Sequence record: NC_070966.1
Direction: 5' to 3' (one strand)
DNA length: 64,000 nucleotides
The position numbers and the translations under genes are program-made. The notes beneath the pieces were generated by a model. It made no database searches, was not told the DNA's origin, and saw nothing but the letters and a program-made list of their open reading frames with translations. Positions 5,560-62,754 of the stretch are shown here, piece after piece; the first letter of the stretch is position 1; the number at the start of each line of letters is the position of its first letter.

Positions 5560-6231
5560 ATGAAAGACATTGTCTTTAATCCTCTCCTTAAGATCTCTAG
5601 TGTGAACCGGTACTCCGGAGTTTATCTGACCAAGAATGAGTCAGTTTCAGATCACACTACTCAAACTGGATTACTATGTATTCTAGTCGGCAACGAGATC
5701 AATAAACGTCTTGCGAAATTGAAATCCTCTGTTAGAGTGAATCTCGAGAAATTAGCCTACAAGGCTTTAATCCACGATCTCGAGGAATCCAAGACTTGTG
5801 ACACTCCTAGAAATGTTAAATACTTCAATGACTTGATTTATCAAGAATTTGAGAGAATGGGTGACCAGGTTGTTCTTGAACTATCTGAACTCTATGAATT
5901 TCCTGAGCTCTATGAGCAATGGAAAAATGCTAAGGATAAGACTCTAGAAGGGTATATTCTTAAGATCTGCGATATGATTCATGTCGTACGTAAACTAGTT
6001 GATGAAGTTGTACTTCTTGGAAATCTTAACATGCTTCAGGTAGCACTGGAGTTGAAGGATCATCTGAAGAAGACTCACGATTATATTAATAAGATTACAG
6101 ATCTACCTGCTGAAGCGATTGACGTCTTTAATGAATTGACGATTTTCTCATTGGATACCGTTAACTATATTCTTAAGAAACATCAATCGGAGATTACAGA
6201 TTATAACTTTACATCTCTGAAGAGCGCATAA
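5560..6231 (+). CDS. HD-domain 5'-deoxynucleotidase / dNTPase (YfbR/DatZ-like)
   Basis: RY...ESVSDH, LIHDLEE...D.P..VKY, ICD metal ligands. Confidence 0.8.
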   Translation: MKDIVFNPLLKISSVNRYSGVYLTKNESVSDHTTQTGLLCILVGNEINKRLAKLKSSVRVNLEKLAYKALIHDLEESKTCDTPRNVKYFNDLIYQEFERMGDQVVLELSELYEFPELYEQWKNAKDKTLEGYILKICDMIHVVRKLVDEVVLLGNLNMLQVALELKDHLKKTHDYINKITDLPAEAIDVFNELTIFSLDTVNYILKKHQSEITDYNFTSLKSA

Positions 6232-9200
6232 TGTCCTTAGAAATTGAATCCATTATTAACAAAGTTGATCTGACTAGTGATGTTCGTGTATGTCACATGT
6301 GCCCACTAGCTGAGAAGTTTGGTGGATGTGATAATCTTGGACGAGTATCTTTTGAGATTGTAGGTCAGAATCCTAAGGTTCTACTTGTAGGTGAAGCACC
6401 TGCAGCTGAGGATCTGAAATCTGAACGACCATTCAGTAGTCAGTCTGGTTCATTCTTGAGAATGGCGATGGCTGAAATTGGCATTAATGATTACGCTCTA
6501 GCGAATGTGATCATGTGTCAACCTAAGAGTGTAAATATCTACACTCCGACTCCTGAAGAGTCCGCTCACTGTAAAGCACATATTCAAAGATTTGTTGAAA
6601 AGTACAAACCTGAGACAGTCATCTTGCTCGGACGAGGAGCATATGAAGTCATTCTACCAGAGAGTTACTTCGCAGGTCAGTCAGTTACGAATGTAACCAA
6701 GAAGAAGGCTATCGAAATTGATGGTGTACGTTATGGAGCAGCATTTCATCCATCGTATATCTTCCGTAATGGTGGTAAAGAATCACCACAGTACATCGAC
6801 TTCTTGAATCGATTGAGACGACTGACTCAGAATAGTGTTGATGCAGAATTCATCGTACCGTTTAAGATCGTTAATCTCGATCAACTAGATGAGACTCTCG
6901 AAGAGTTTGATGTCTACAAAGAACTAGGCTTCGACTATGAAGGTACCTCGCTTGATCCGTATGACGTCAATTATCAGGTTCTCGGACTTGGTATGTCATC
7001 GATGGACAAGGCAGTTTATATCGACTTTCATCGAGAGCCTACTCAAGAAGAAAAGAATAAGATATCTGACTTCATTCGTAAGAAGCAGATGTGGGTTTAT
7101 AACGTCAACTATGAAACCAAAGTTACATGGTCTAAGTTGAGTAATGATCTTATTCGATTCCACGATGCGATGACTCTTGTAAAGATCGACTGTTCTCCTG
7201 GATCACTGAAGGACAATGCTCGTAAATATCTGAATGCAGAAATCTGGGAAGAGATCGTAGGTAACTTGACTACCTTGTTCTACGATATCTTCCAATTTAT
7301 GAAGAAGATTGAGGAGAAATCTCCTAAACTATATAATGCTTGTAGACAAGCTAATATGGAGGCGATCTATCTTCTTAAGGAAGATACTGCTGAGAAAATC
7401 ACTGGTGGTAAGAAGAATCCTAAGGTTACGAGATATCGTACCAAGCAGGCAGATCATGCAGACTACATATCTGCTAAGATCTCTGCACTTAGAGAATTCT
7501 GCTCTGATGAAGATATCCAACGTGGATTTACTAAGTTTCCTTACGAGTGGGCAGCTGTTCCTCCGAAGATTCTAGGTGAATACTGCTGCTACGACTCTTA
7601 TTACACACTAGGTCTTAAGAATCATCTGTGGGATAAGTATAAGAGCGTTTACCAGTATTATATCACCCAAGGGTGGCTAGGCTCTACGATGGAGAGCTAT
7701 GGTCTGAATTGGGATGATGATAAAGCTTCTGAGCATGAACGATTCTATCTCGTTGAAGCTACGACATGCTTGAATCAGATCATTCAGAAATTGGATTTTG
7801 GTGAGAAAACTCTTGATATTCATACAAGAGCAAGCATGATTTTCAATGACTCTAGTCTTCCTGATGCTAGGAAACTCATTGATCTGAAAGGTATCTTTAA
7901 TCCAGGTACTCCAGATAAACTTAAACAGAAACCCTTCTGGGATAAGTACGTAACTGACTTTACGACTGCAATATCCATCTATCTTGTTCTCAGTGAACAG
8001 ATTCTAATGTCTCCAATCATTCCTGACCAAGCGATTGAGTTAGTCGATCGTCAAGATCTCAATAAAGCTATTGAGAATTTGATGTCAGTAGATTGGACTA
8101 AGTACGATGGAGTTGATCTTAAGACTGCCAAGTCAATTCAGAAATTGATGATGGATCTTATTGGTACACTCGATGAGAAGATCGGATGGAAGCTATATGC
8201 ATTCAGAAGTGATGTTCTAGAGTGGCAATATAAAGCTCACGAAACGTACGGTGGACTAGATATCGACAATCGTGAGACTTGGACTCCTGAGTTCGAGTTG
8301 TTATATCTTCTGAGAAGATATAAAAAGGTTGAGAAGAGTAAGAATACGTACATCAATGGTAAGGTAGGTAGAGCACGAGTATGGTTGTCGACAGTCGATG
8401 ATTACCAGAAGCCTCCTGTTCGACTGAAGCGTTACTTTGATGTTATGGAAGAGAGACAGTGGAAGAAGTATGAACTTCAGCATAACGAGAGATGGATTCT
8501 TGATACAGAATTCAATGTTGCTGGTGCAAATACTAAACGATGGAAAGCAGCTATTCATACTGTTCCATGGGGATCAGAACTCCGAGAGATCTATGCATCT
8601 CGTTGGTGGGATGGTCTGTTTATGCATTACGACTACTCTCAGGCAGAAGTTCGAATTCTAGCAGCTATCTCTCAGGATAGAGCACTACTGGAAGCATTCG
8701 CTGATCCTGATACTGACATTCACATGTTCGTTGCATCTCGAATCTGGAAGAAAGATCCTAAGGATGTGACTCCAGCTGAGCGTCGATATGCTAAGGTCTG
8801 CTCGTTCTCGATTTTGTACGGTAAGTCTATCGAAGGATTTGCTACTGAACATACCAAGGGTGATGTTGCAGCAGCTAAGCGTATCTTTGATGACTTCTAT
8901 GCAGCATTCCCTCAAGTTAAGGAGTGGATTGAGAAACAGCATAGAGATGCGAAAGTATCTGGTAAGGTCTTTACCTTATTCGGAGATCCTCTGTATCTTG
9001 ATATGTCGGACCCTAATGGTGCTATGCGTGATGCTCAAAACTGGCCAATTCAGTCCTCGAGCAGCTGTGTAGCAGGATGGGCTATCTGGATGAACTACGA
9101 GTTTTCTAGAAATAGAAACATTCCGATTCTTCCAATGGTCTTTACTCACGACTCTCACGATATGGAATTCAGATGTCAACATCTATTCGAGACGATTGAT

Positions 9201-9560
9201 ACTGTTCTCGAAACTGCAGTTGATCTACCTAAGCGTAGATTTAATCTTCCGATGAAGATCGACTGGGAAATCGGTGTTAATCAGTCTGATGCAATTGAGT
9301 TCAAAGAAACATCTCGATTTGATGAAGGTCGAGGTCGTACGTATCACTTTGAATGCAATGAAAATGCAATGATGCCTGTATTCGATCGTCTAAAGAACTA
9401 CTTTGACATCGAATATGAAGTCACTTCTAGAGAGACTGAGAGAGCATCGCTGAAAGAAATGTTCGTTGCAAGACGAGCATTCTCTAAGTATCTTGGTACA
9501 GATGTAACCGTCGTAGGTGGTAACCTCAAACTAGTGAAGAAAAATGGGATAAAAATATGA
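6231..9560 (+). CDS. polA: Family A DNA polymerase with N-terminal family-4 uracil-DNA glycosylase-like domain and 3'-5' exonuclease
   Basis: UDG4: CHMC, VGEAP, ANVIMC, FHPS. Exo: FDYE, YNVNYE, YCCYD. Pol: DYSQAEVRILA, RRYAKVCSFSILYG, NWPIQS, THDS. Confidence 0.92.
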   Translation: MSLEIESIINKVDLTSDVRVCHMCPLAEKFGGCDNLGRVSFEIVGQNPKVLLVGEAPAAEDLKSERPFSSQSGSFLRMAMAEIGINDYALANVIMCQPKSVNIYTPTPEESAHCKAHIQRFVEKYKPETVILLGRGAYEVILPESYFAGQSVTNVTKKKAIEIDGVRYGAAFHPSYIFRNGGKESPQYIDFLNRLRRLTQNSVDAEFIVPFKIVNLDQLDETLEEFDVYKELGFDYEGTSLDPYDVNYQVLGLGMSSMDKAVYIDFHREPTQEEKNKISDFIRKKQMWVYNVNYETKVTWSKLSNDLIRFHDAMTLVKIDCSPGSLKDNARKYLNAEIWEEIVGNLTTLFYDIFQFMKKIEEKSPKLYNACRQANMEAIYLLKEDTAEKITGGKKNPKVTRYRTKQADHADYISAKISALREFCSDEDIQRGFTKFPYEWAAVPPKILGEYCCYDSYYTLGLKNHLWDKYKSVYQYYITQGWLGSTMESYGLNWDDDKASEHERFYLVEATTCLNQIIQKLDFGEKTLDIHTRASMIFNDSSLPDARKLIDLKGIFNPGTPDKLKQKPFWDKYVTDFTTAISIYLVLSEQILMSPIIPDQAIELVDRQDLNKAIENLMSVDWTKYDGVDLKTAKSIQKLMMDLIGTLDEKIGWKLYAFRSDVLEWQYKAHETYGGLDIDNRETWTPEFELLYLLRRYKKVEKSKNTYINGKVGRARVWLSTVDDYQKPPVRLKRYFDVMEERQWKKYELQHNERWILDTEFNVAGANTKRWKAAIHTVPWGSELREIYASRWWDGLFMHYDYSQAEVRILAAISQDRALLEAFADPDTDIHMFVASRIWKKDPKDVTPAERRYAKVCSFSILYGKSIEGFATEHTKGDVAAAKRIFDDFYAAFPQVKEWIEKQHRDAKVSGKVFTLFGDPLYLDMSDPNGAMRDAQNWPIQSSSSCVAGWAIWMNYEFSRNRNIPILPMVFTHDSHDMEFRCQHLFETIDTVLETAVDLPKRRFNLPMKIDWEIGVNQSDAIEFKETSRFDEGRGRTYHFECNENAMMPVFDRLKNYFDIEYEVTSRETERASLKEMFVARRAFSKYLGTDVTVVGGNLKLVKKNGIKI

Positions 9561-10288
9561 GTCGAGCAAAATCACTGATCGACATGATTAAAGGAACCAA
9601 GAACGAGTCTGGTGACGATGACGACGAAATCTCAAATCGTCGTCGTGGTGGTACTTGGATTGATCCTCATCATGTTGACGCAGCATCCAAGAATCTGAAG
9701 CGTACTCAGTCATTCTACAAGAAGGCTAGTAATGCTAGCTCAGTTGAAGATCAAGAGTATTGGTTAGCTCGAGTCTTTAACAAGAATGCTGTTGCTAAGA
9801 GAATCTCCTCTGGATTCTATAACAAGGAAGCTAAGGCAGGAGTCGTAGGCGTCGATGACGTTGAAGATCTGTCAGCATCTCTTGTTACAGGTAATCCAAG
9901 AGCATCGGGTCGTGTTACGACTAAGGATCACACACGTAATCCTGAAGAGATCTTTGCTGCTAACCAGATCGTTAAAGCTCTCTACGATACGATTGACAAG
10001 AAGTGGCCTGGACGTCCTCAGAACAAGATGGTTCTGACATACTTCCTCAAGGTCAATAAAGCTGATCATCTTATTAACTTTAAGCTTCCATACGATGATC
10101 GTGTGGAAGAAATCATCTCTTCTATTGAGAAATATGCTAAAGACAATAACTCCAAGATTACTTGGACTACTCCTAAGCAGTTTCAGAATTTTTCAGGTAT
10201 TGAAGACAGAATGTATGCAAAGGTCATGCAGTTCCTAGCAGATAATGCTGTAGAATTGGGTGCTCTTATCATTCGAGGTAAGAAATAA
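9557..10288 (+). CDS. Putative sigma-like transcription factor carrying the MSRA leader; paralogue of 10731..11387
   Basis: Shares EYW..VF.KN..K.I.S.F..K and VL(T/S)YF blocks with 10731..11387; NPEEIF...LYDTI...KMVL resembles a sigma region 3-4 linker. Confidence 0.4.
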   Translation: MSRAKSLIDMIKGTKNESGDDDDEISNRRRGGTWIDPHHVDAASKNLKRTQSFYKKASNASSVEDQEYWLARVFNKNAVAKRISSGFYNKEAKAGVVGVDDVEDLSASLVTGNPRASGRVTTKDHTRNPEEIFAANQIVKALYDTIDKKWPGRPQNKMVLTYFLKVNKADHLINFKLPYDDRVEEIISSIEKYAKDNNSKITWTTPKQFQNFSGIEDRMYAKVMQFLADNAVELGALIIRGKK

Positions 10289-10635
10289 TGGACCAGAGAG
10301 TACTTGACGTTCTAGCTCAAGGATATATTAATCGTGAGCTTACACTACCAGCCGCTGATCTATCTAAGGCTGTTATTTATATTGTTAATTATCATGTTAG
10401 ACATAAGACAAGTGGACTGGCAGATCTAAAGACTGCTTATGGTAGTCCTGAGTCTTCTAATCTGGCAGTTAGGTTCTACTCTACAGGTCTATTTAATGGT
10501 GTTGTAGATAATGATTCTAAGAGCTCAGATCTATTCTGGTCTCTATTCAATTCGATGACTACATCTCTGATGATTGAGTCCATCAATGAATCGTTAGCTG
10601 AATCCTCGAAAGAAGTTGAAGTGATCGCCGAATAA
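10288..10635 (+). CDS. Hypothetical protein
   Basis: ORF coupled to the upstream stop (TAATG), in operon. Confidence 0.7.
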   Translation: MDQRVLDVLAQGYINRELTLPAADLSKAVIYIVNYHVRHKTSGLADLKTAYGSPESSNLAVRFYSTGLFNGVVDNDSKSSDLFWSLFNSMTTSLMIESINESLAESSKEVEVIAE

Positions 10636-10730: not shown

Positions 10731-11387
10731 ATGGCTAGCGATAGACAGATGAAAGGTTACATCTGGGGAGAGCAAATCCTGGATCATGCTCACATTGAGC
10801 ATTATGCAAGGGCGATGAGATCCGATGATGTACGTACCGAGGAGTACTGGTACCAGGCAGTATTTCATGGGAAGAACCACTCTAAGGTTCTTCAGTCGGA
10901 AGTCTTTCATAAGAAAATCCGCAACAACGTTACAAATAAAGTAGAAGTTGAGACTCTGGTTTCTACTTCTAACTCTGACGTCGTTAATGATGTTCTAGCA
11001 GAGGAGAGAAAGAATGAAGTAAAATATTCTCGAGTTATCGAGGATGATAAGGTCGGTAATATGTCCGACTATCTTCCCGATGCAACTGTTGGGTTCTCAG
11101 TTATTATCAGAGAAATAGCTGACAAATGCAACGATGATGAAATCAAGGTCCTGAGCTACTTTGTATGTCAGGAACATCTGGATAATATCCTATTCGAGGG
11201 GAATTCGATTCATTCATCAAACGATCGCTTCAATCGTACGATCCTAGGTATCTGGGAAAAGAATGTGAAGAGCATCAATGATCTGAATCGATTTGTAGGT
11301 ACTCGTGCTCGTGCTGATAAAGCTAGGTGGAGACTCTGCAATCTCTTGAAGAAGGAGTATCCTGAACTCTTGTCAGGAAAACGATGA
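10731..11387 (+). CDS. Putative sigma-like transcription factor; paralogue of 9557..10288
   Basis: Shared blocks with 9557..10288; C-terminal SINDLNRFVGTRARADKARWRLCNLLK is HTH-like; lies just upstream of rpoC. Confidence 0.4.
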   Translation: MASDRQMKGYIWGEQILDHAHIEHYARAMRSDDVRTEEYWYQAVFHGKNHSKVLQSEVFHKKIRNNVTNKVEVETLVSTSNSDVVNDVLAEERKNEVKYSRVIEDDKVGNMSDYLPDATVGFSVIIREIADKCNDDEIKVLSYFVCQEHLDNILFEGNSIHSSNDRFNRTILGIWEKNVKSINDLNRFVGTRARADKARWRLCNLLKKEYPELLSGKR

Positions 11388-11623
11388 GTCCATCTAACAA
11401 GCCCTATGACCCAAAGTTAGACACAATCATCTACGAAAATAGACATCCTGAAACGGGTTTGTGCATCTCGGTGCATAAATACGGAAGCAGTGAACCGAAG
11501 ATCAAGTTAGGTCCAAGAATCGTCGGTGACGACTCCAAACCTGTCTACTTGAAATTAGGTAGAATATCTATAAACGAGTTTTTGTGGATATCCGAGGTCC
11601 TAAAACCCTACGTTAAATCTTAG
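11384..11623 (+). CDS. Small protein, possible PC4-like ssDNA-binding fold
   Basis: PYDPKLD...ISVHKYGSSEPKIKL...KLGRIS beta-strand pattern recalled from PC4-like small proteins. Confidence 0.35.
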   Translation: MSPSNKPYDPKLDTIIYENRHPETGLCISVHKYGSSEPKIKLGPRIVGDDSKPVYLKLGRISINEFLWISEVLKPYVKS

Positions 11624-11635
11624 AGGATCTAAAAC

Positions 11636-14600
11636 ATGCAACTTTCTCTGAAGCCAGTCTCTCCAGAATCTGTACTCTTGACTTCACAAGGAGAGGTCAA
11701 GTCGTATGAGACTCTGAACTTCAAGACAGGTCTACCTGTTCGAGACGGTCTCTTGTGCCAGAAGGTATTCGGACCGATTAGAGACTACGTATGTGAATGC
11801 GGCAAGTACGATGGTAAGAAATACCAGGGACATACTTGTGAGAAGTGCGGTGTTACGGTAGCGAGTTCACGTGCTCGTACTGTGAGAATGGGTCATATTG
11901 ATCTTCAAGTTCCCATTCTTAATCCGTTGATGATCGAGTCGATCGAATCGATTATAGGTCTCCCATCCAGAAAGATGGAGGACTTTATGAAGAACAAGAT
12001 CTGCCTGAAATTTTCAGCATCTGGTACAGGTAATCTTGTTCGTAAGGACGGTACACGAGGTATCGCGTATTTTGTAGATCCTAAGGAATCTGATCCTCGA
12101 TCTCCTACTCTGCAGCATACGAAGTCGTCTCTGGTTCTTTATGAACTCTTGACGGATCTCGATATTGAAGAGACGCTCAAAGTCAATGGATCCAAGATCC
12201 TGAAGACCTATGTGCAGAAGAACTTCCCTCTTTCTAATCTCTTCATTCGTTATCTACCGGTATCTCCAGCAGGATACCGTCCAGTCACTCGTATGAGAAA
12301 CTACTATTCTCAGCATCCCAAGAATGACCTTTATCAGAAGATCATTCGACGTACTCTGCGAGTGAAGGAACTGGTTAATATCAATGCAGACTCAATGATT
12401 CTTCAGGAAGAGGCAGGCATTCTGTATAAGTCTGTCGATCAACTCTTCACTGGAGGAGCTCGAGATGGCGATGGGAACCCTCTTCCTGGAACCATTGAGA
12501 AGATGATGGGTAAGAGAGGTATTCTCCGAGGAAATCTTCTCGGTAAGCGTACCGACTACTCTGGACGTTCAGTTATCACTTCAGCAGGTGATCGTGTAGA
12601 AGTGGACCAGATTGGTCTACCTCGTAAGATGGCATACATCTTGTTTCGTCCTTTCATTCTCCGTTATCTGATGACGGAGTATCTGGATCATTATACTGAA
12701 GCACTGAAGCACTACGAGAAGAAGACTGTTATCGCACTGAAGTCTCTCGAGATGGTAGCTAAGGATTATCCGATCATCATGAATCGTGCTCCTACGCTTC
12801 ATAGATACGGTGTAATGTCTTTCCGTACCAAGTTGGTAAATGGTAAGGCTATCCTCGTTCATCCGATTGTATGTTCTCCATTCAATGCAGACTTCGACGG
12901 AGATACTGTAGCTATCCACTTGCCTCTTTCAGCTAAGTCTGTTCAGGAGTGCAAAGATTATCTCATGCCTCAGAACAATCTCCTGTCTTCACTTGATGGT
13001 GATCCGATCATCAATATGTCGCACGAGATGGTTATCGGTCTTGCTATCATGTCTCGTATTAAGGATCATGATAAGGGATTCGGTACATTCCGACGTATGG
13101 ATGAGCTCGAGTATCTTCATACTGTCACCAATCCTCAGACTAGCCGTCCTACACTTGAGATCTACGATAGAATCAAGTGGAAAGATGAACGAGGAGTGAC
13201 AGAGACGTGCTATGGTCGACTTCTTCTCGAGCAGACATTCAAGACCAAGAATCTTCCGAAGGACTTCTCTAAGAAGACTATTCGTCGGATGATCAGTGAT
13301 GCGTACGACAAGCTTGGACCTGATGAACTGATTAAGGTACTGGATGTAGCTACTCAGCTTTCATTCAAGTATGCTACGAACTCTGGTTTCTCAGTTTCGA
13401 TTGATGATTGTAAGGTACCTTCTACGAAACCTGCTAAGATTGCGAAAGCTAGAGAGCAGGAAGCTGAGAATTATCGTCAATTCGATAACAATGAAATCAA
13501 TCTTGCAGAGCGTCGAGAGAACAATATTCGTCTCTGGAACGATGTCTTTGAAGATCTTCATCACGATTGGATGAAAGAAGCAGGTGAGGACAATCCGGTA
13601 GTTCTTATGTATACTACTGGTGCTCGTGTTAGTAAGTCTCAGGTCAATCAGATCGGAGTCGCTAAGGGTCTTGTATCCAATGCACTCAATCAGATCATCG
13701 AGAAGCCTATGGTTAACTCCTTCCGTGAAGGATTGTCGACGTTTGAGTACTTTGCATCTTGCTCTGGATCTCGTAAGTCCATGGCAGACAAGAAGAATCT
13801 GACTCCCAAGTCTGGTTATCTTACACGTCGAATGATTACTGCTAGCCGAGATTTCTTCATTAATTCAGATGATTGTGGTACCGATAAGGGTATCATGCGT
13901 ACGATGAAGTCCTCGTATGGACGTTATCGTTGCGACAATGGTGAGATGATTGGTACGAACAATAGTGAAGAACTCGTTAAGGTTCGTAGTCCGATTCATT
14001 GTGAGTCGCATGGTGGTATCTGCGTTAAGTGCTACGGTATTGATCCTGCTAAGCGTAAGATCGTCACGAAGGGGTCCAACGTAGGAGCTATTGCAGCTCA
14101 CTCGTTGACTGAATCTACAACTCAGATGACGATGCGTACCTTCCATACATCTGGTGCAGTCGTTCTGAAGGATAGTCCGATGGTCATTACTGCCCAGAAG
14201 GATGGTAAGATCAGCTGGGATACTCTTCATCCTGTCTACAGCAAGATTCATGTTGTTGCAGATATGGAAGATTGGGATACACCTCTCAATGATCGATTGA
14301 CGTATACAGTTCATAACAAGATGTCTCGCATTCTTGTTAAGGATGGTCAGTCTGTCAAGAAGGGTGATCCTCTAGCGATCTACGTTGATGAAGATCTTGA
14401 GAGCGACGACGTCAGTGGATCGCTCCCTAAGATTGAATCTCTGTATGAAGGTCGAGTACCTCCGAAAGCGTACAAGTCAGTTATCTCGAAGGTAGCTGGT
14501 AAGATTGGTATTAACATCGGAGATGAAGGTCTTAAGATCTTCGTTGATGGTGAATACCAAGGTACTGCTCATCCTAAGACTCCGGTATTCGTTGCTCAAG

Positions 14601-15019
14601 GTCAGTATGTTGAAGCTGGTCAGACTCTCTCGTTTGGTTCTCCAGACGTAGTAGGTTTGTTCAAGGAGACAAAGGATCTTGATCTCGCTTACAAGGTCTT
14701 TGAGAAGACTCTGATGGATATCTACAATAAGGAAGGTCTCCAGCCAGTACCAACTCATTCGGAGATGATCTTCAGAGCGATGTCTAATCTGGTATACACC
14801 GAGAGTGGTCCTTATGGTCTTCGATCCCATGGAGACAAGGGTAGCATTATGCTGAAGGGTATTACTCAGATTGGTGCGAATCATCCGTCCTGGTTGAAGT
14901 CAATCGGATTCGGATGGGTAGCTCAGACGATCAGAACTTCTGCTGTGAATCTTGCTACCACGTACGATCTTCCTACCGAACGTCTGATGTCTGGTGAATT
15001 GATTTACGAGGATAAATAA
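11636..15019 (+). CDS. rpoC: DNA-directed RNA polymerase beta-prime subunit, unsplit
   Basis: CECGKY..CEKC zinc site, LLGKRTDYSGRSVI, NRAPTLHR, FNADFDGD catalytic motif, bridge helix SGYLTRR, second Zn site, trigger loop QMTMRTFH. Confidence 0.97.
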   Translation: MQLSLKPVSPESVLLTSQGEVKSYETLNFKTGLPVRDGLLCQKVFGPIRDYVCECGKYDGKKYQGHTCEKCGVTVASSRARTVRMGHIDLQVPILNPLMIESIESIIGLPSRKMEDFMKNKICLKFSASGTGNLVRKDGTRGIAYFVDPKESDPRSPTLQHTKSSLVLYELLTDLDIEETLKVNGSKILKTYVQKNFPLSNLFIRYLPVSPAGYRPVTRMRNYYSQHPKNDLYQKIIRRTLRVKELVNINADSMILQEEAGILYKSVDQLFTGGARDGDGNPLPGTIEKMMGKRGILRGNLLGKRTDYSGRSVITSAGDRVEVDQIGLPRKMAYILFRPFILRYLMTEYLDHYTEALKHYEKKTVIALKSLEMVAKDYPIIMNRAPTLHRYGVMSFRTKLVNGKAILVHPIVCSPFNADFDGDTVAIHLPLSAKSVQECKDYLMPQNNLLSSLDGDPIINMSHEMVIGLAIMSRIKDHDKGFGTFRRMDELEYLHTVTNPQTSRPTLEIYDRIKWKDERGVTETCYGRLLLEQTFKTKNLPKDFSKKTIRRMISDAYDKLGPDELIKVLDVATQLSFKYATNSGFSVSIDDCKVPSTKPAKIAKAREQEAENYRQFDNNEINLAERRENNIRLWNDVFEDLHHDWMKEAGEDNPVVLMYTTGARVSKSQVNQIGVAKGLVSNALNQIIEKPMVNSFREGLSTFEYFASCSGSRKSMADKKNLTPKSGYLTRRMITASRDFFINSDDCGTDKGIMRTMKSSYGRYRCDNGEMIGTNNSEELVKVRSPIHCESHGGICVKCYGIDPAKRKIVTKGSNVGAIAAHSLTESTTQMTMRTFHTSGAVVLKDSPMVITAQKDGKISWDTLHPVYSKIHVVADMEDWDTPLNDRLTYTVHNKMSRILVKDGQSVKKGDPLAIYVDEDLESDDVSGSLPKIESLYEGRVPPKAYKSVISKVAGKIGINIGDEGLKIFVDGEYQGTAHPKTPVFVAQGQYVEAGQTLSFGSPDVVGLFKETKDLDLAYKVFEKTLMDIYNKEGLQPVPTHSEMIFRAMSNLVYTESGPYGLRSHGDKGSIMLKGITQIGANHPSWLKSIGFGWVAQTIRTSAVNLATTYDLPTERLMSGELIYEDK

Positions 15020-15022
15020 AGG

Positions 15023-15220
15023 ATGCAAGACCTATCTCAACTATGTGAAGTTGAGATGGAGAAGTTAGTTGAAATACTAATGAGATCGACTCACTTGACA
15101 CTCGACGGTGTTGAGCTGAGTCGATCTCATGAATATCATAATAGCCCATCTGTCTCTACAATTAAAACTCATAAAGTCCTTGATGACTCATACATTACAG
15201 TTAGACTGAAATATGTATAA
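15023..15220 (+). CDS. Hypothetical protein
   Basis: Short ORF 3 nt after the rpoC stop. Confidence 0.5.
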   Translation: MQDLSQLCEVEMEKLVEILMRSTHLTLDGVELSRSHEYHNSPSVSTIKTHKVLDDSYITVRLKYV

Positions 15221-15926
15221 CTTGCAATACGATGATGGAATTCTTAAATCAAATAGGGAGTCTCTCGTAAACATACGAGCTCCATTCTTCAAACGGATTG
15301 ATCGACGATCTCGCAAGTCGTCCATCGAGAGATTAATGATCTCACCTGATACAACAAGAAATTGTAGTCAGATTAAGAGATTTCTCGTTCCGTTCAACGA
15401 TAAGTACTTGTACAGCATGCATGTGACTTATCGTGACGACTTAAAGTGTCAATCTATTTATGACACTAACAAGTCTCTCAAGCGAATCCTCCGATCTAAA
15501 ATGTTAATGTCAGCTGTGAACAGGATAAATGAGTATCCTCAACTCAAAGCAGACATATTGTCTGTAATCAAGCTTGTAGTTAATTCTTGGGAGTTTGATG
15601 GTCTTATCACAGACATTGAATGGCTCCAGGATGAAAATCTACTGGATACTGTGATATCTAAGTGGAAACTGAAGAAGTACGAATCCTCTACAGAGCGAGG
15701 GTCAGTGATCAATCTCTTAATAAAGAGTTTTGATGGAGTTCCACTTAATCTTCTATCTCATCTAGAGATGAAGAAAATCAGTATTGAGGATACTGACATT
15801 GAGGACGTTAAGTTTAAATGTCCTCTGATATTAATGCGATCGAATTCATCTTGTGCAGGATTCATATCTAAGTCCTTGGATAAAGGACTACCTGTGAGTC
15901 TGTTCAAGATTGATATAAAAGAGTAA
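15213..15926 (+). CDS. Hypothetical protein
   Basis: 237-aa ORF, last gene of the + strand arm. Confidence 0.7.
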   Translation: MYNLQYDDGILKSNRESLVNIRAPFFKRIDRRSRKSSIERLMISPDTTRNCSQIKRFLVPFNDKYLYSMHVTYRDDLKCQSIYDTNKSLKRILRSKMLMSAVNRINEYPQLKADILSVIKLVVNSWEFDGLITDIEWLQDENLLDTVISKWKLKKYESSTERGSVINLLIKSFDGVPLNLLSHLEMKKISIEDTDIEDVKFKCPLILMRSNSSCAGFISKSLDKGLPVSLFKIDIKE

Positions 15927-59365: not shown

Positions 59366-60910
59366 TTAAGACGGTGCTGAACCATCGTCGTCTTTACTAT
59401 CCGAATCTTTAACAATCTTAGGTTCTAATTTAGAAGTCTTGGGATTAGGTTGATTCGTATTTCGGCTATTGCCTTTATGTTCACCATCGTATTTCAAGAA
59501 GTTCAGCTTATCCTGAAGGAATGTCTTCAAGGCATCTTCGTCAACAATATCATTCAGACCTGCATCTTCAATGTCATTCAAGAAGGTGAAAGTATTACGT
59601 AACATACCAACGGTAGCGTCGTGATACTCTAGCTTCTCAAGTTCGTCAACATTGACTGTTTCATTGAGGAACTGAACTTCTAGATCTGCGAGAGTTACAT
59701 CTCGGGTAGCAGTACAATTCTTCAAGTGAGTTAAGCAGATTTGAAGAACACCAGATGCAATACTGTTCTGGATGGCTTTAATCTTACGCAAATATCTAGC
59801 GTACTTCTTAATAGTCTCTGTCTTGGATGCTCCACCAAAGAAGAGCTCTGTAGGGAATCCAATTGATGTACAGATTACGTCTCGAGTATCTCGAATCGTA
59901 TTCATAACGTCACTGACATTACTATTATTTCGAACGTCGATATTCTGCATACCTCCTTTACCAGCAAAGGTAGGTACAACTTTAATTCGACCTGCAACAG
60001 TTAGAATATCTGATGCAGTCAACATTCCTGATTGTGGATCAACAGCAATCTTTTTATTGAAGAGATTTTCATACTCTCTTGCAATATTAAATGCTTCCTT
60101 AGGGTCAGTCGATGCAGGAACTTCTACACCAACAATCGATCCAGCTGTAATATCAGAAAGCTTAACTGCAGGAATCAATTTCTCAAGAAGTTGTAACTCC
60201 TTGATCTTTGATAGAACTCCGAACAGAATAGGCTTGCCGATACGAGCATGAGATGGTAGCTGAGATAGTCCTTCAATTTTGGACAATTCCTGCTTCTCAT
60301 GTTCTGAGAATGTAGGTACTCTGATCTTGCGACCAGAAAGAATAAAGTGAGCGATCTCGTGAGGATCTTTCAATTCATAAGAATCTTGATTAGAACGATT
60401 CTTAGTCTTGACAAGAAACTTGAACGGATAACCCTGACGATAAAATCCGAGAATTGCTGATGGATTTAGATCGTCAGTAATTTCAGTCACACCCTTACCA
60501 GGTTGGATTGTCATACGAAGAGGGTACTCACCATATGAAAGCAAATCTGGCGTAATATCATTCACGATATTATCAAGGTCGAACATCTTCTGAAACTTCT
60601 CAAGTTCTCTATTGTACTTCTCATTAGGAGAAGTAACTTTGAGAATCTCACCTGAACTGATGTCTGGAGTGAGAGCGTCTTCAGAGATATTTGTGAGAAG
60701 AGCATCAACCAGATAATAACCTTTGACCTGATTGAACTCTTTAAGATAGTCATCTCTTGAATTCACTGCTGATGTGAAGACAGATGCCATAGCACTAGCT
60801 ACAACTGGAGATGCTTTAGGAGTTGCACCTGTAGATTTCTTAGCTACAGGTGCAGGAGTAGTCTTGGCTTCGAATATCGAGCCATATAGTCTTTCAAAGA
60901 GTCCTGCCAT
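59366..60910 (-). CDS. Portal protein (gp20-like)
   Basis: Position after the terminase; DLLSYGE, RIGKPIL, SIGFP, 514 aa. Confidence 0.85.
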   Translation of the reverse strand: MAGLFERLYGSIFEAKTTPAPVAKKSTGATPKASPVVASAMASVFTSAVNSRDDYLKEFNQVKGYYLVDALLTNISEDALTPDISSGEILKVTSPNEKYNRELEKFQKMFDLDNIVNDITPDLLSYGEYPLRMTIQPGKGVTEITDDLNPSAILGFYRQGYPFKFLVKTKNRSNQDSYELKDPHEIAHFILSGRKIRVPTFSEHEKQELSKIEGLSQLPSHARIGKPILFGVLSKIKELQLLEKLIPAVKLSDITAGSIVGVEVPASTDPKEAFNIAREYENLFNKKIAVDPQSGMLTASDILTVAGRIKVVPTFAGKGGMQNIDVRNNSNVSDVMNTIRDTRDVICTSIGFPTELFFGGASKTETIKKYARYLRKIKAIQNSIASGVLQICLTHLKNCTATRDVTLADLEVQFLNETVNVDELEKLEYHDATVGMLRNTFTFLNDIEDAGLNDIVDEDALKTFLQDKLNFLKYDGEHKGNSRNTNQPNPKTSKLEPKIVKDSDSKDDDGSAPS

Positions 60911-60918
60911 TTGCTTCT

Positions 60919-62754
60919 CTACTTGTAAACTTGGAAGTCACTCGTACCTAGAATGCCTTCATAACTATTAGTAGGCTTACTACTTGAAGCGATAGCCTCA
61001 ATGAATTCTTCCGTTGTCGTATTTGCACGATAACGATTCATACCGAGTTTAGCACTCCAGATAGATCCGCAGATAGCATCAGCACCGTCTTTACTACCTT
61101 CCATAGGATGGTCGACCTTACGGGTACCAACTTCAAGTTCTTTCAATTCTTTACTTAGGATAGGATGCTTGATCCCATGCCATCTACTTTCAAGAATTGC
61201 GAGCTTGAATTCATTGTAAGGATCGAAAGTTCTATCGCAAGATAGAAGCTCAGTATTGAAACCTTCTAGAAGCAAGTCTTGACGAAGATTTGTAGACTGA
61301 TAACCATCGGTAGTAATGCAAGTGACTGGATAACCTCGAGCTCGAAGATCAATCATAAGATTCTTGATCTTATAAATTGGTACTTCTTGACCGATACGTG
61401 CCTCGATGTACATGACAAAGTCAGTACTGTATACCGGTGAGGACTCAACGATCTCCTTACCTGCGATAGCGTCAAATCGCCTCGTAGTAATGATACCATC
61501 AAGTCTCGTCGATGCAATACCAGTTTTATCGTGTTTGATACCAAGGTCAACATGAATAAATCTCGGACGACGATCCTTGTCAAGTTTAGTGAAGTCAATA
61601 AACTCAATCAATCTTTCATTCGGATTGAAGAAGTCAACAGATACCACATCCTTGTGAACAGGATTATCTTTCTTGAAGGACTCTTCGATCTTCTCCACTG
61701 ATGGAATGAATCGATGAGCTGCCTGAGTACTCTTACCAGCGATGTCCTGAAGTGCTCGGTAAATATCTTTCTCGAAGTTTACCTGATACTCAATTGGGAC
61801 ATCCATGATGTAGGATTCGTCAATACCAATCGTTCCAGTTTGTGGAGTGATAATGAACGGATCCTTGAATTGGTTACCTACGAATACCTTAAAGGTCTGA
61901 CCAGAATACTGAATCTTCCACGGAGGGAGAACCTTCCAGATCGGATTGTCCCAAATTCTAATCTTAGGATCGTCTTCTCTACCCTTAAGTAGATAATCTT
62001 CGATGAATGAACCTGAGTCAGTCTTCGAGGAGTCGATCCACATACGTCCTGGGTACGATTCATTCTTCATGAAACGTGACTGGAGACGAGCTAGAACACC
62101 GTTATAGTTCTCGACTGCCTGACCTGCAACCTTATTCTGGAAGTTAATTTCCGATAGAATAGTTGAGAAGACAGCTTTACCGAGAACGTCTGATGGACGA
62201 GAACCTGTAATGATATCAATATTGTTAGGAAGAATCGACAATTTACCTGAAGTCTTCTTCATCTCTGATTTGAAGAATGGTGAATTCTTAAGGTAAGTAA
62301 TGATCTGGTCGTAAAGAACGGTACCAGCTAGACTCTTCGTAGCGTTCATCAGAGCCAAGACGATCTTGGTACTCTTGATGAGATTATACTTTTCATGCGG
62401 ATCCTTAAGATACAGCAACTTACATAGATCGTAAGTCACACCTGCTAGTGCGCATGTAGACTTACCCTGACCAATCGATCCTGTAAGAACGATCTCAAGA
62501 TAAGGTGAGAAGAATGGATTAGGGTAGATCTCATAAAGAGCGCTACGCCAGATCGGATAGGTATTGTCACCAAACATGTCACCCATGAAGTAATCATCAT
62601 CGATGAATTTGTCAATGGTAGGTGGAGCATCTACGTACCCTCCCATTTTAGCGAGAGTACGTAGTGTTTCAGTCTTACCATGAGCAGCCATGAGATTCTG
62701 TACAAGAGCTCCCATCGACTGATCAACAGGACTCGTGTTATTCTCAGTGCTCAA
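60919..62754 (-). CDS. Terminase large subunit
   Basis: GSIGQGKS Walker A; nuclease HVDLG, TTDGYQS, VDHP.EGSKDGADA. Confidence 0.92.
   Translation of the reverse strand: MSTENNTSPVDQSMGALVQNLMAAHGKTETLRTLAKMGGYVDAPPTIDKFIDDDYFMGDMFGDNTYPIWRSALYEIYPNPFFSPYLEIVLTGSIGQGKSTCALAGVTYDLCKLLYLKDPHEKYNLIKSTKIVLALMNATKSLAGTVLYDQIITYLKNSPFFKSEMKKTSGKLSILPNNIDIITGSRPSDVLGKAVFSTILSEINFQNKVAGQAVENYNGVLARLQSRFMKNESYPGRMWIDSSKTDSGSFIEDYLLKGREDDPKIRIWDNPIWKVLPPWKIQYSGQTFKVFVGNQFKDPFIITPQTGTIGIDESYIMDVPIEYQVNFEKDIYRALQDIAGKSTQAAHRFIPSVEKIEESFKKDNPVHKDVVSVDFFNPNERLIEFIDFTKLDKDRRPRFIHVDLGIKHDKTGIASTRLDGIITTRRFDAIAGKEIVESSPVYSTDFVMYIEARIGQEVPIYKIKNLMIDLRARGYPVTCITTDGYQSTNLRQDLLLEGFNTELLSCDRTFDPYNEFKLAILESRWHGIKHPILSKELKELEVGTRKVDHPMEGSKDGADAICGSIWSAKLGMNRYRANTTTEEFIEAIASSSKPTNSYEGILGTSDFQVYK

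Follow-up and report, generated by a model that had tools for sequence, protein, structure and literature searches.

An intact RNA polymerase beta-prime gene without a beta gene in Rhizobium phage RHph_TM30 and its relatives: a possible hybrid polymerase with host subunits

Results

The last 64 kb of the genome of Rhizobium phage RHph_TM30 (bases 143624-207623 of NC_070966.1; this 64,000-nucleotide stretch, analysed here as a whole, is referred to as the window) carry gp334, a gene already named 'RNA polymerase beta-prime subunit' in GenBank. The phage was isolated on Rhizobium from Mexican agricultural soil and belongs to the Kleczkowskaviridae, genus Cuauhnahuacvirus; its record is circular and comprises 207,623 bp. 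The motifs of gp334 were located in an alignment of 13 sequences (gp334, eleven relatives and E. coli RpoC) that extends down to 28% identity, and are listed here with window coordinates and lengths in amino acids (aa). SI3 is sequence insertion 3 of the E. coli subunit and SBHM stands for sandwich-barrel hybrid motif.

11636-15019, + strand: gp334, beta-prime, 1127 aa, ATG start, five Pfam Rpb1 domains
11792-11848, + strand: Zn-binding site 1 (C53/C55/C68/C71), aligned with E. coli C70/C72/C85/C88 and kept in at least 90% of the aligned sequences
12884-12904, + strand: NADFDGD catalytic Mg-binding motif, residues 417-423, placed by the alignment
13652-13852, + strand: F-loop and bridge helix, residues 673-739, with 28 of 67 residues identical to E. 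coli 740-806
14069-14482, + strand: trigger loop, residues 812-846 and 920-949, around a shortened SI3-like SBHM insert

Within the single gp334 chain, the Pfam domains Rpb1_1 to Rpb1_5 (PF04997, PF00623, PF04983, PF05000 and PF04998; E-values from 4e-30 to 1.5e-5) follow one another in the bacterial order, and the nearest solved structures in the PDB are bacterial beta-prime chains (E about 1e-152). Since gp334 is one unsplit chain, it lacks the beta-prime split of the phiKZ/AR9 type. Against the NCBIfam RpoC equivalog TIGR02386 it scores 651.7 bits, under the curated cut-off of 963.5. In the NADFDGD motif, N417, D419, D421, G422 and D423 are invariant among the 13 sequences and A418 and F420 nearly so, while the key Gly and Arg positions of the F-loop and bridge helix are invariant in the clade. 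A second Zn site (C747, C789, C796 and C799) and switch 2 are also present. The trigger loop reads AHSLTESTTQMTMRTFH, aligned with E. coli 911-945. An initial annotation, made from the letters of the window, had described an intact, unsplit beta-prime with all RpoC motifs and a trigger-loop base reading AHSLTESTTQ, and both descriptions were borne out by the five domains and the alignment.

Compared with E. coli beta-prime, gp334 is shorter by 17 residues at the N-terminus, by 46 at the C-terminus (E. coli 1362-1407) and by a few short loops, and about 110 of the 188 residues of SI3 are missing; weak matches to Biotin_lipoyl and Peptidase_M23, which are of SBHM type, were found at residues 889-916. 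Each catalytic position is either the same in all 13 sequences or differs in a single one of them, down to 28% identity. Between gp334 and its counterpart in the sister phage RHph_Y65, 51 nucleotide differences were found, of which 48 are synonymous and three are conservative replacements (dN/dS 0.018), so the gene is under strong purifying selection. Because the Mg-binding aspartates, bridge helix and trigger loop are invariant or nearly so down to 28% identity, gp334 is almost certainly catalytic, as judged from its sequence.

The clamp helices of gp334 that bind sigma are full length and keep the equivalents of E. coli R275 and E295, and the helices of the secondary-channel rim are kept as well. 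These retained surfaces, and the lack of a phage beta for gp334 to pair with (see below), would suit a protein that makes no RNA and shuts off host transcription as a decoy or sponge, either by titrating away sigma, omega, NusG or Gre/DksA of the host or by blocking assembly of the host core. For such a decoy, however, there would be no need to hold the trigger loop, bridge helix and Mg-binding aspartates almost invariant, or to keep dN/dS at 0.018 over all 1127 residues, and we regard this reading as decidedly unlikely.

Searches for beta, alpha and omega

Six-frame Pfam searches of the whole RHph_TM30 record gave no match at E<=10 for Rpb2_6, Rpb2_7, RNA_pol_A_bac or RNA_pol_Rpb6, and the sole match to Rpb2_3 scored 13 bits and contained a stop codon. 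The same searches recovered beta-prime, at a single locus, and all 14 control genomes gave matches. Sigma-70 region 2 was not found in the record by family search. A custom beta profile was also built from E. coli RpoB and viral beta sequences (258 aligned segments) and run, with filters off, on every frame of at least 30 aa across the genome; its best match (E 1.2) was an SBHM-like patch within beta-prime itself and no real beta was found, whereas the matching beta-prime profile scored 1.7e-204. The large proteins without a label (gp179, gp273-276, gp245, gp240 and others) gave no beta signal. The 1109-aa open reading frame (ORF) at 6231-9560 was considered as a hidden beta and rejected, as it is a fusion of UDG and PolA, and the other large ORFs of the window and genome turned out to be DUF4815, tail lysozyme, sheath, AAA ATPase, SbcCD or vWA proteins, or to lack a beta signal.

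Searches with the beta catalytic domains likewise found no beta in eight genomes, namely RHph_TM30, Vibrio phages Va2, 1.031.O and 150E35-1, E. coli phages EP_H11 and IME392, Ralstonia phage RP13 and Acinetobacter phage Ab1-TPeters. Among the controls, beta was detected in phage YerA41 (2e-31 and 5.5e-97) and also in Carin-5, D69 and Arash, all phages whose beta-prime is more distant than gp334. Beta, alpha and omega are absent from the eight genomes. The initial annotation had noted no beta, alpha or omega gene in the window, which holds for the complete record too, and had offered, as one explanation, that beta is encoded elsewhere; the family searches and the unfiltered custom profile refute the latter, with no RpoB homologue in the rest of the genome nor in the seven further genomes that carry beta-prime only.

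A phage-encoded beta could still have diverged past sequence recognition, in which case gp334 would belong to an autonomous polymerase, like those of phiKZ or AR9. There is precedent for phage polymerases of high divergence (PMC7598289, PMC7481178), and unassigned proteins are at hand: gp179 (749 aa), gp275 (471 aa), gp225 (377 aa, present in all four of the genomes compared with one another below), gp332 and the 611-aa and 514-aa proteins of the head module. Yet gp334 is nearer to bacterial beta-prime than are the subunits of phages whose beta did turn up (E 1e-31 to 1e-97); a beta evolving along with gp334 ought then to be just as easy to see, and the unfiltered beta profile was negative. 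Moreover, gp179 and gp275/276 are not common to the other beta-prime-only phages, and the large unassigned proteins that are shared belong to the head module, the expected place of terminase and portal. A beta of this kind seems unlikely.

Beta-prime-only phages and their beta-carrying relatives

The presence of beta-prime without beta was not confined to RHph_TM30. By tblastn, compact beta-primes with 28-32% identity to gp334 were found in the seven Vibrio, E. coli, Ralstonia and Acinetobacter phages named above, and metagenomic relatives with 36-55% identity encode proteins that are all 1067-1130 aa long. The contigs of the latter show a helicase, PolA, small ORFs, beta-prime, small ORFs and then lysis and structural genes, with no beta. 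Beta-prime without beta is thus a trait of a lineage rather than an oddity of one genome.

By comparison, 80 IMG/VR loci (L016-L095) encode a relative of beta-prime (24-32% identity), and in 78 of them beta adjoins or is fused to beta-prime, as found by phmmer at E 1e-45 to 1e-80; a contig end truncates the remaining two. Among the 70 IMG/VR contigs with both subunits, beta and beta-prime are fused in 45 (an ORF of about 2000-2400 aa) and separate in 25, and in the separate-gene contigs beta usually comes after beta-prime, opposite to bacterial rpoBC. One IMG/VR contig labelled viral, L067, carries an rpoB-rpoC pair nested within Clostridia/Bacillota in the tree and is probably bacterial DNA or a very recent capture.

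An all-against-all comparison showed that RHph_TM30, Va2, EP_H11 and RP13 share a replication core, beta-prime and a myovirus structural module, and that this core holds no unexplained large protein outside the head module. YerA41 has a core colinear with that of RHph_TM30; it includes sheath, baseplate, the major capsid protein, which is 31% identical, and the 611-aa protein of the head module, at 32% identity. Its beta-prime, about 25% identical to gp334 and encoded close to its PolA gene, is in two pieces that are followed directly by a beta of 925 aa (E 5.5e-97). One broad phage lineage therefore contains both members with beta-prime and beta and members with beta-prime only.

The beta-prime gene is not in one piece in all of these phages. 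In EP_H11 and IME392 it is split, with the gene for the C-terminal part upstream of that for the N-terminal part; in RP13 it is split in the normal order; and in Vibrio phage 150E35-1 it is interrupted by two small ORFs. The split or interrupted loci are:

L011, 5908-7422 and 9002-10570
L214
L014, with 109909-111468 of the RP13 record
L005, 8001-12803

Inteins were seen in the PolA genes of two metagenomic relatives (L008, 4045-8079, and L198, 817-5679), whose products are 1344 and 1620 aa long.

Origin of gp334

Compared with 80 named bacterial beta-prime proteins, gp334 shows 30-35% identity (34% to that of Rhizobium helianthi). Two unrooted trees were inferred: 79 rows were analysed with LG+G4, and 33 rows with the LG+C20+F+G4 mixture model. 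Both trees unite the beta-prime-only sequences in a single group with 100% support in the Shimodaira-Hasegawa-like approximate likelihood ratio test (SH-aLRT). Bacteria form a separate group with 99-100% support that excludes gp334, with Rhizobium deep within Alphaproteobacteria, and two beta-carrying viral groups are separate from both. The order among the four groups is weakly supported (42-87), and the trees are unrooted.

The bacterial-type domain order, and nothing more, would fit a recent capture of a host rpoC, a decaying remnant or an assembly artefact. Against these stand megablast matches to the gp334 ORF at 98.5-100% identity in ten Rhizobium phage records, representing eight distinct isolates with different Rhizobium hosts, as well as the 34% identity to the Rhizobium subunit, the position outside the bacterial group and the strong purifying selection. 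This explanation is already refuted. In particular, recent host capture is ruled out by the low identity, the position in the trees and the lack of host-specific similarity; the initial annotation had likewise taken gp334 to be divergent rather than recently captured, and the phylogeny with bacterial RpoC that it proposed has now been run and does not nest gp334 in a host genus.

The gp336 family

Homologues of gp336, a 218-aa protein encoded upstream of gp334, were found near beta-prime, mostly directly upstream, at six further loci (L006, L008, L198, L199, L200 and L201) and in Va2, 1.031.O, 150E35-1, EP_H11, IME392 and RP13. The Ab1-TPeters match has a stop codon inside and is not near beta-prime but in another part of the genome. 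Among the members close to beta-prime are distant ones on short contigs that end within the beta-prime gene. A second, paralogous copy is present in RHph_TM30 (gp338), L006 and L008. The family, of proteins some 215 aa long, has few members: 1.84 billion proteins yielded 59 cluster representatives. A word-based search retrieved two relatives only and ESM Atlas was uninformative. Between RHph_TM30 and RHph_Y65, gp336 shows seven synonymous and no non-synonymous changes. No member was found in YerA41, Carin-5, D69 or Arash, nor within 10 kb on either side of beta-prime in the 80 beta-carrying IMG/VR loci. The gp336 family and beta thus have complementary distributions, but with all beta-prime-only phages in one clade this complementarity amounts to roughly one evolutionary event rather than to many separate ones. 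The family and its link with beta-prime are new here; neither they nor the beta of YerA41 figured in the initial annotation.

An AlphaFold2 model of gp336, built from 48 family members, reached a mean predicted local distance difference test (pLDDT) score of 87.5 and is mostly helical, with just two strands of three residues and no barrel. In an exhaustive structural comparison, 26 of the 29 top matches to residues ~110-218 were sigma-factor chains, nearly all to region 4 (Z 5-6.5), among them sigL (Z 6.4, root-mean-square deviation 2.5 A over 71 residues), sigH, sigB, RpoE, CnrH, sigA and the DNA-bound region 4 of sigma-E; the phiEco32 sigma chain 9m7y_F was matched weakly (Z 4.9). Foldseek gave no match to gp336 at E<=0.001. 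As a sigma factor by sequence, gp336 was considered and rejected, with no support from Pfam, PHROG, NCBIfam or PDB sequences and a negative hhalign comparison with RpoE. Based on the model, gp336 appears to be a beta-prime-associated protein with a sigma-4-like C-terminal domain and not a sigma factor.

The strict linkage of beta-prime to this family and its paralogue could also mean that gp334 dispenses with beta altogether and acts, by itself, as a homodimer or together with gp336/gp338, as a nucleic-acid enzyme of a non-canonical kind. All known two-barrel polymerases, however, need a second barrel that supplies basic residues (PMC7824862), and the mostly helical model of gp336 offers no barrel; we consider an enzyme of this sort very improbable.

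Gene context and other features of the genome

gp334 lies at the end of a co-directional replication block, immediately before convergent late structural genes, and its neighbours overlap or nearly abut. As had been pointed out in the initial annotation, small ORFs of unassigned function rather than rpoB flank it, and these gave no family match. The block around gp334 contains, besides gp334 itself:

6231-9560, + strand: UDG-fused family-A DNA polymerase, 1109 aa (Pfam UDG and DNA_pol_A), at the head of the co-directional block
9557-10288, + strand: gp338, 243 aa, paralogue of gp336 (gp336-family hidden Markov model, E 1.2e-16)
10288-10635, + strand: gp337, 115 aa, homologue in L008/L009 (E 1.4e-10)
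10731-11387, + strand: gp336, 218 aa, of the family encoded near beta-prime in beta-prime-only phages
11384-11623, + strand: gp335, 79 aa, between gp336 and gp334, homologue in L006/L007 (E 1e-12)
15023-15220, + strand: gp333, 65 aa, starting 4 nucleotides past the gp334 stop, homologue in L008/L009 (E 2e-6)
15213-15926, + strand: gp332, 237 aa (annotated shorter, 15336-15926), downstream of beta-prime in closer relatives

Family searches gave no match for gp337, and neither family searches nor ESM Atlas gave a lead for gp332, homologues of which were found in L008/L009 (E about 1e-45) and L006 (E 7e-8). The small ORF equivalent to gp333 overlaps the end of beta-prime in L006, L008 and L198. 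The other large ORFs of the window encode tail, sheath or baseplate proteins, and the genome has the hallmark genes of a tailed phage (sheath, baseplate, major head protein and prohead protease). In the head module, the 611-aa (60919-62754, - strand) and adjoining 514-aa (59366-60910, - strand) proteins had no Pfam, PHROG or PDB-sequence match; the former is among the proteins best conserved across RHph_TM30, Va2, EP_H11, RP13 and YerA41. As both are encoded upstream of the major capsid protein and the prohead protease, the two are probably terminase and portal.

The polymerase places RHph_TM30 among phages with a UDG-fused, 'SP15-like' PolA, which include RP13, EP_H11, IME392, YerA41, SP-15 and Carin-5 (PMC13697223, PMC12686479). 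RHph_TM30 itself has been listed among the phages with a YerA41/SP-15-like polymerase (PMC12686479), a group described in PMC13697223. Thymidine-hypermodified DNA has been confirmed experimentally in Carin-5, YerA41 and SP-15, and RP13 DNA has been reported to be hypermodified, with the base not yet identified (PMC13697223, PMC12686479).

Across the whole RHph_TM30 record, the 8-mers AGCCTTCC and GCCTTCCT occur on the + strand of 16-17 intergenic regions, at about 19-20 times the genome rate, and are probably part of conserved terminator-like hairpin stems. ATTTATAW was tried as a late-promoter motif and rejected, since the window holds 9 matches where 8.4 would be expected, which is no enrichment; on the - strand, four of its six occurrences lie in gaps upstream of late genes, often after a hairpin (window 20322, 27062, 55595 and 63333). 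Elsewhere in the record, a cluster of 20 tRNA genes interspersed with homing endonucleases occupies 128636-142106, and a protein with a TROVE (Ro60-like) domain is encoded at 140406-141974. The product of gp019 (L002, 10623-11873), annotated as PurA/'2-aminooxy adenylosuccinate synthetase', scores 93 bits against PurA and 30 bits against PurZ, both far under the NCBIfam cut-offs, which leaves a part in adenine modification (a Z-base pathway) no more than possible. The annotation of gp086 (L002, 35958-36704; 248 aa) as transcription termination factor Rho is doubtful, as no NCBIfam match was found at E<=0.01.

Discussion

The best surviving explanation for a conserved beta-prime without a phage beta, and one to which we would give modest preference, is a hybrid RNA polymerase core composed of gp334, host beta and the host alpha dimer. 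This reading, the other explanation offered in the initial annotation, is reached by elimination of the alternatives together with the conserved catalytic residues. Since the phage has no barrel detectable by profile and the genes shared by the clade include no plausible candidate, host beta on a host alpha dimer is the only evident source of the second barrel that two-barrel polymerases need.

Under this hybrid reading, gp334 would be made from the replication-gene block as a functional catalytic beta-prime and would assemble with host beta and the alpha dimer into a hybrid core. The position of its gene would fit a middle-expressed product that acts on the late genes. The gp336-family protein would probably serve alongside gp334 as a specificity or assembly factor; gp336 and gp338 might supply promoter or beta-flap contacts, or assist assembly. 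As to purpose, we can only speculate that the exchange might accommodate possibly modified phage DNA in the main channel, or that it might provide a polymerase resistant to the phage's own shut-off of host transcription, through a subunit without the targeted surfaces. What we infer is that gp334 is active and that it binds the beta and alpha subunits of the host, along with what gp336 does and what the exchange is for. Taken in full, the proposal that a widespread phage lineage swaps the host RNAP beta-prime for its own and, with a sigma-4-like gp336 partner, forms a chimeric core for phage genes, possibly on modified DNA, is a tentative one that we place slightly on the doubtful side.

Several points weigh against a hybrid core. 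gp334 has a divergent lid and rudder and is missing the C-terminal tail, the part of E. coli beta-prime that contacts omega. Identity to any bacterial beta-prime is low (about 31%), and the phage beta-primes show no special similarity to the subunit of their own hosts, Rhizobium ranking 15th of 40 for gp334. YerA41 has its own beta, and the ancestor may therefore have had a phage beta; giving that up for the host subunit would be a big step. Because host cores are stable once assembled, host beta would have to be free or freshly synthesised for a hybrid to form. As for gp336, modest structural scores are the sole basis of its sigma-like reading: no Pfam sigma match, including Sigma70_r2, was found in the 48 family members, hhalign gave a probability of 0.1 against RpoE, and the N-terminal domain, when folded alone from a shallow alignment, reached a pLDDT of 66 and showed no sigma-2 match, with its best scores (Z 4.6) to unrelated proteins.

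A search of the literature found no paper on a beta-prime-only phage or on the RHph_TM30 beta-prime, and reviews of jumbo-phage RNAPs mention no beta-prime-only case (PMC7824862, PMC7598289). The mReC of Weinheimer and Aylward (2020), Caudovirales that encode a multi-subunit RNAP, were selected for beta and beta-prime on a contig (PMC7481178), and because that definition required both subunits, the lineage described here was excluded by design. Phylogenetic surveys that require both subunits miss it.

Known phages either encode a complete polymerase of their own or redirect the intact host enzyme with small factors. A lone core subunit, if the hybrid reading is true, would be a third strategy, a host take-over distinct from both sigma or accessory-factor hijacking and autonomous phage polymerases. 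It would also represent a natural interchange of a core subunit between virus and cells at only about 31% subunit identity. Phages of Rhizobium, Vibrio and E. coli, which are harmless systems that can be cultured, would then allow tests of which beta-prime surfaces are essential for assembly, of the capacities of a minimal, 1127-aa beta-prime that lacks the C-terminal tail and most of SI3, and of whether the swap serves transcription of hypermodified DNA. In addition, gp336 gives an uncharacterised family a concrete functional context.

Comparison with known systems

Like RHph_TM30, the mReC are tailed phages with a cellular-like beta-prime that is found by standard profiles and branches outside the cellular clades. 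The RHph_TM30 clade differs from them in lacking beta and in carrying the gp336 family instead. Unlike bacterial RpoC, gp334 has no cognate beta in its genome and branches outside Bacteria. The phiKZ/AR9-type RNAPs are likewise phage homologues of the large cellular subunits without alpha or omega; in contrast to RHph_TM30, their beta and beta-prime are split, there are usually two sets (virion and non-virion), and they are independent of the host RNAP (PMC7598289, PMC7824862).

YerA41 shares with RHph_TM30 the broad phage lineage, with colinear replication and structural genes, and both YerA41 and Carin-5 share a UDG-PolA polymerase of the same type. Unlike RHph_TM30, however, YerA41 and Carin-5 encode beta and lack the gp336 family. 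Small phage proteins that redirect the host core provide a further comparison. T4 gp55 is such a factor and directs the core to phage promoters. The phiEco32 sigma, with gp79, acts on the host core in a similar manner (PMC12276001), and gp336's C-terminal domain resembles sigma region 4. Factors of the phiEco32 type swap or modify only sigma or surface contacts, whereas a hybrid core of gp334 with host beta and alpha would swap a catalytic core subunit.

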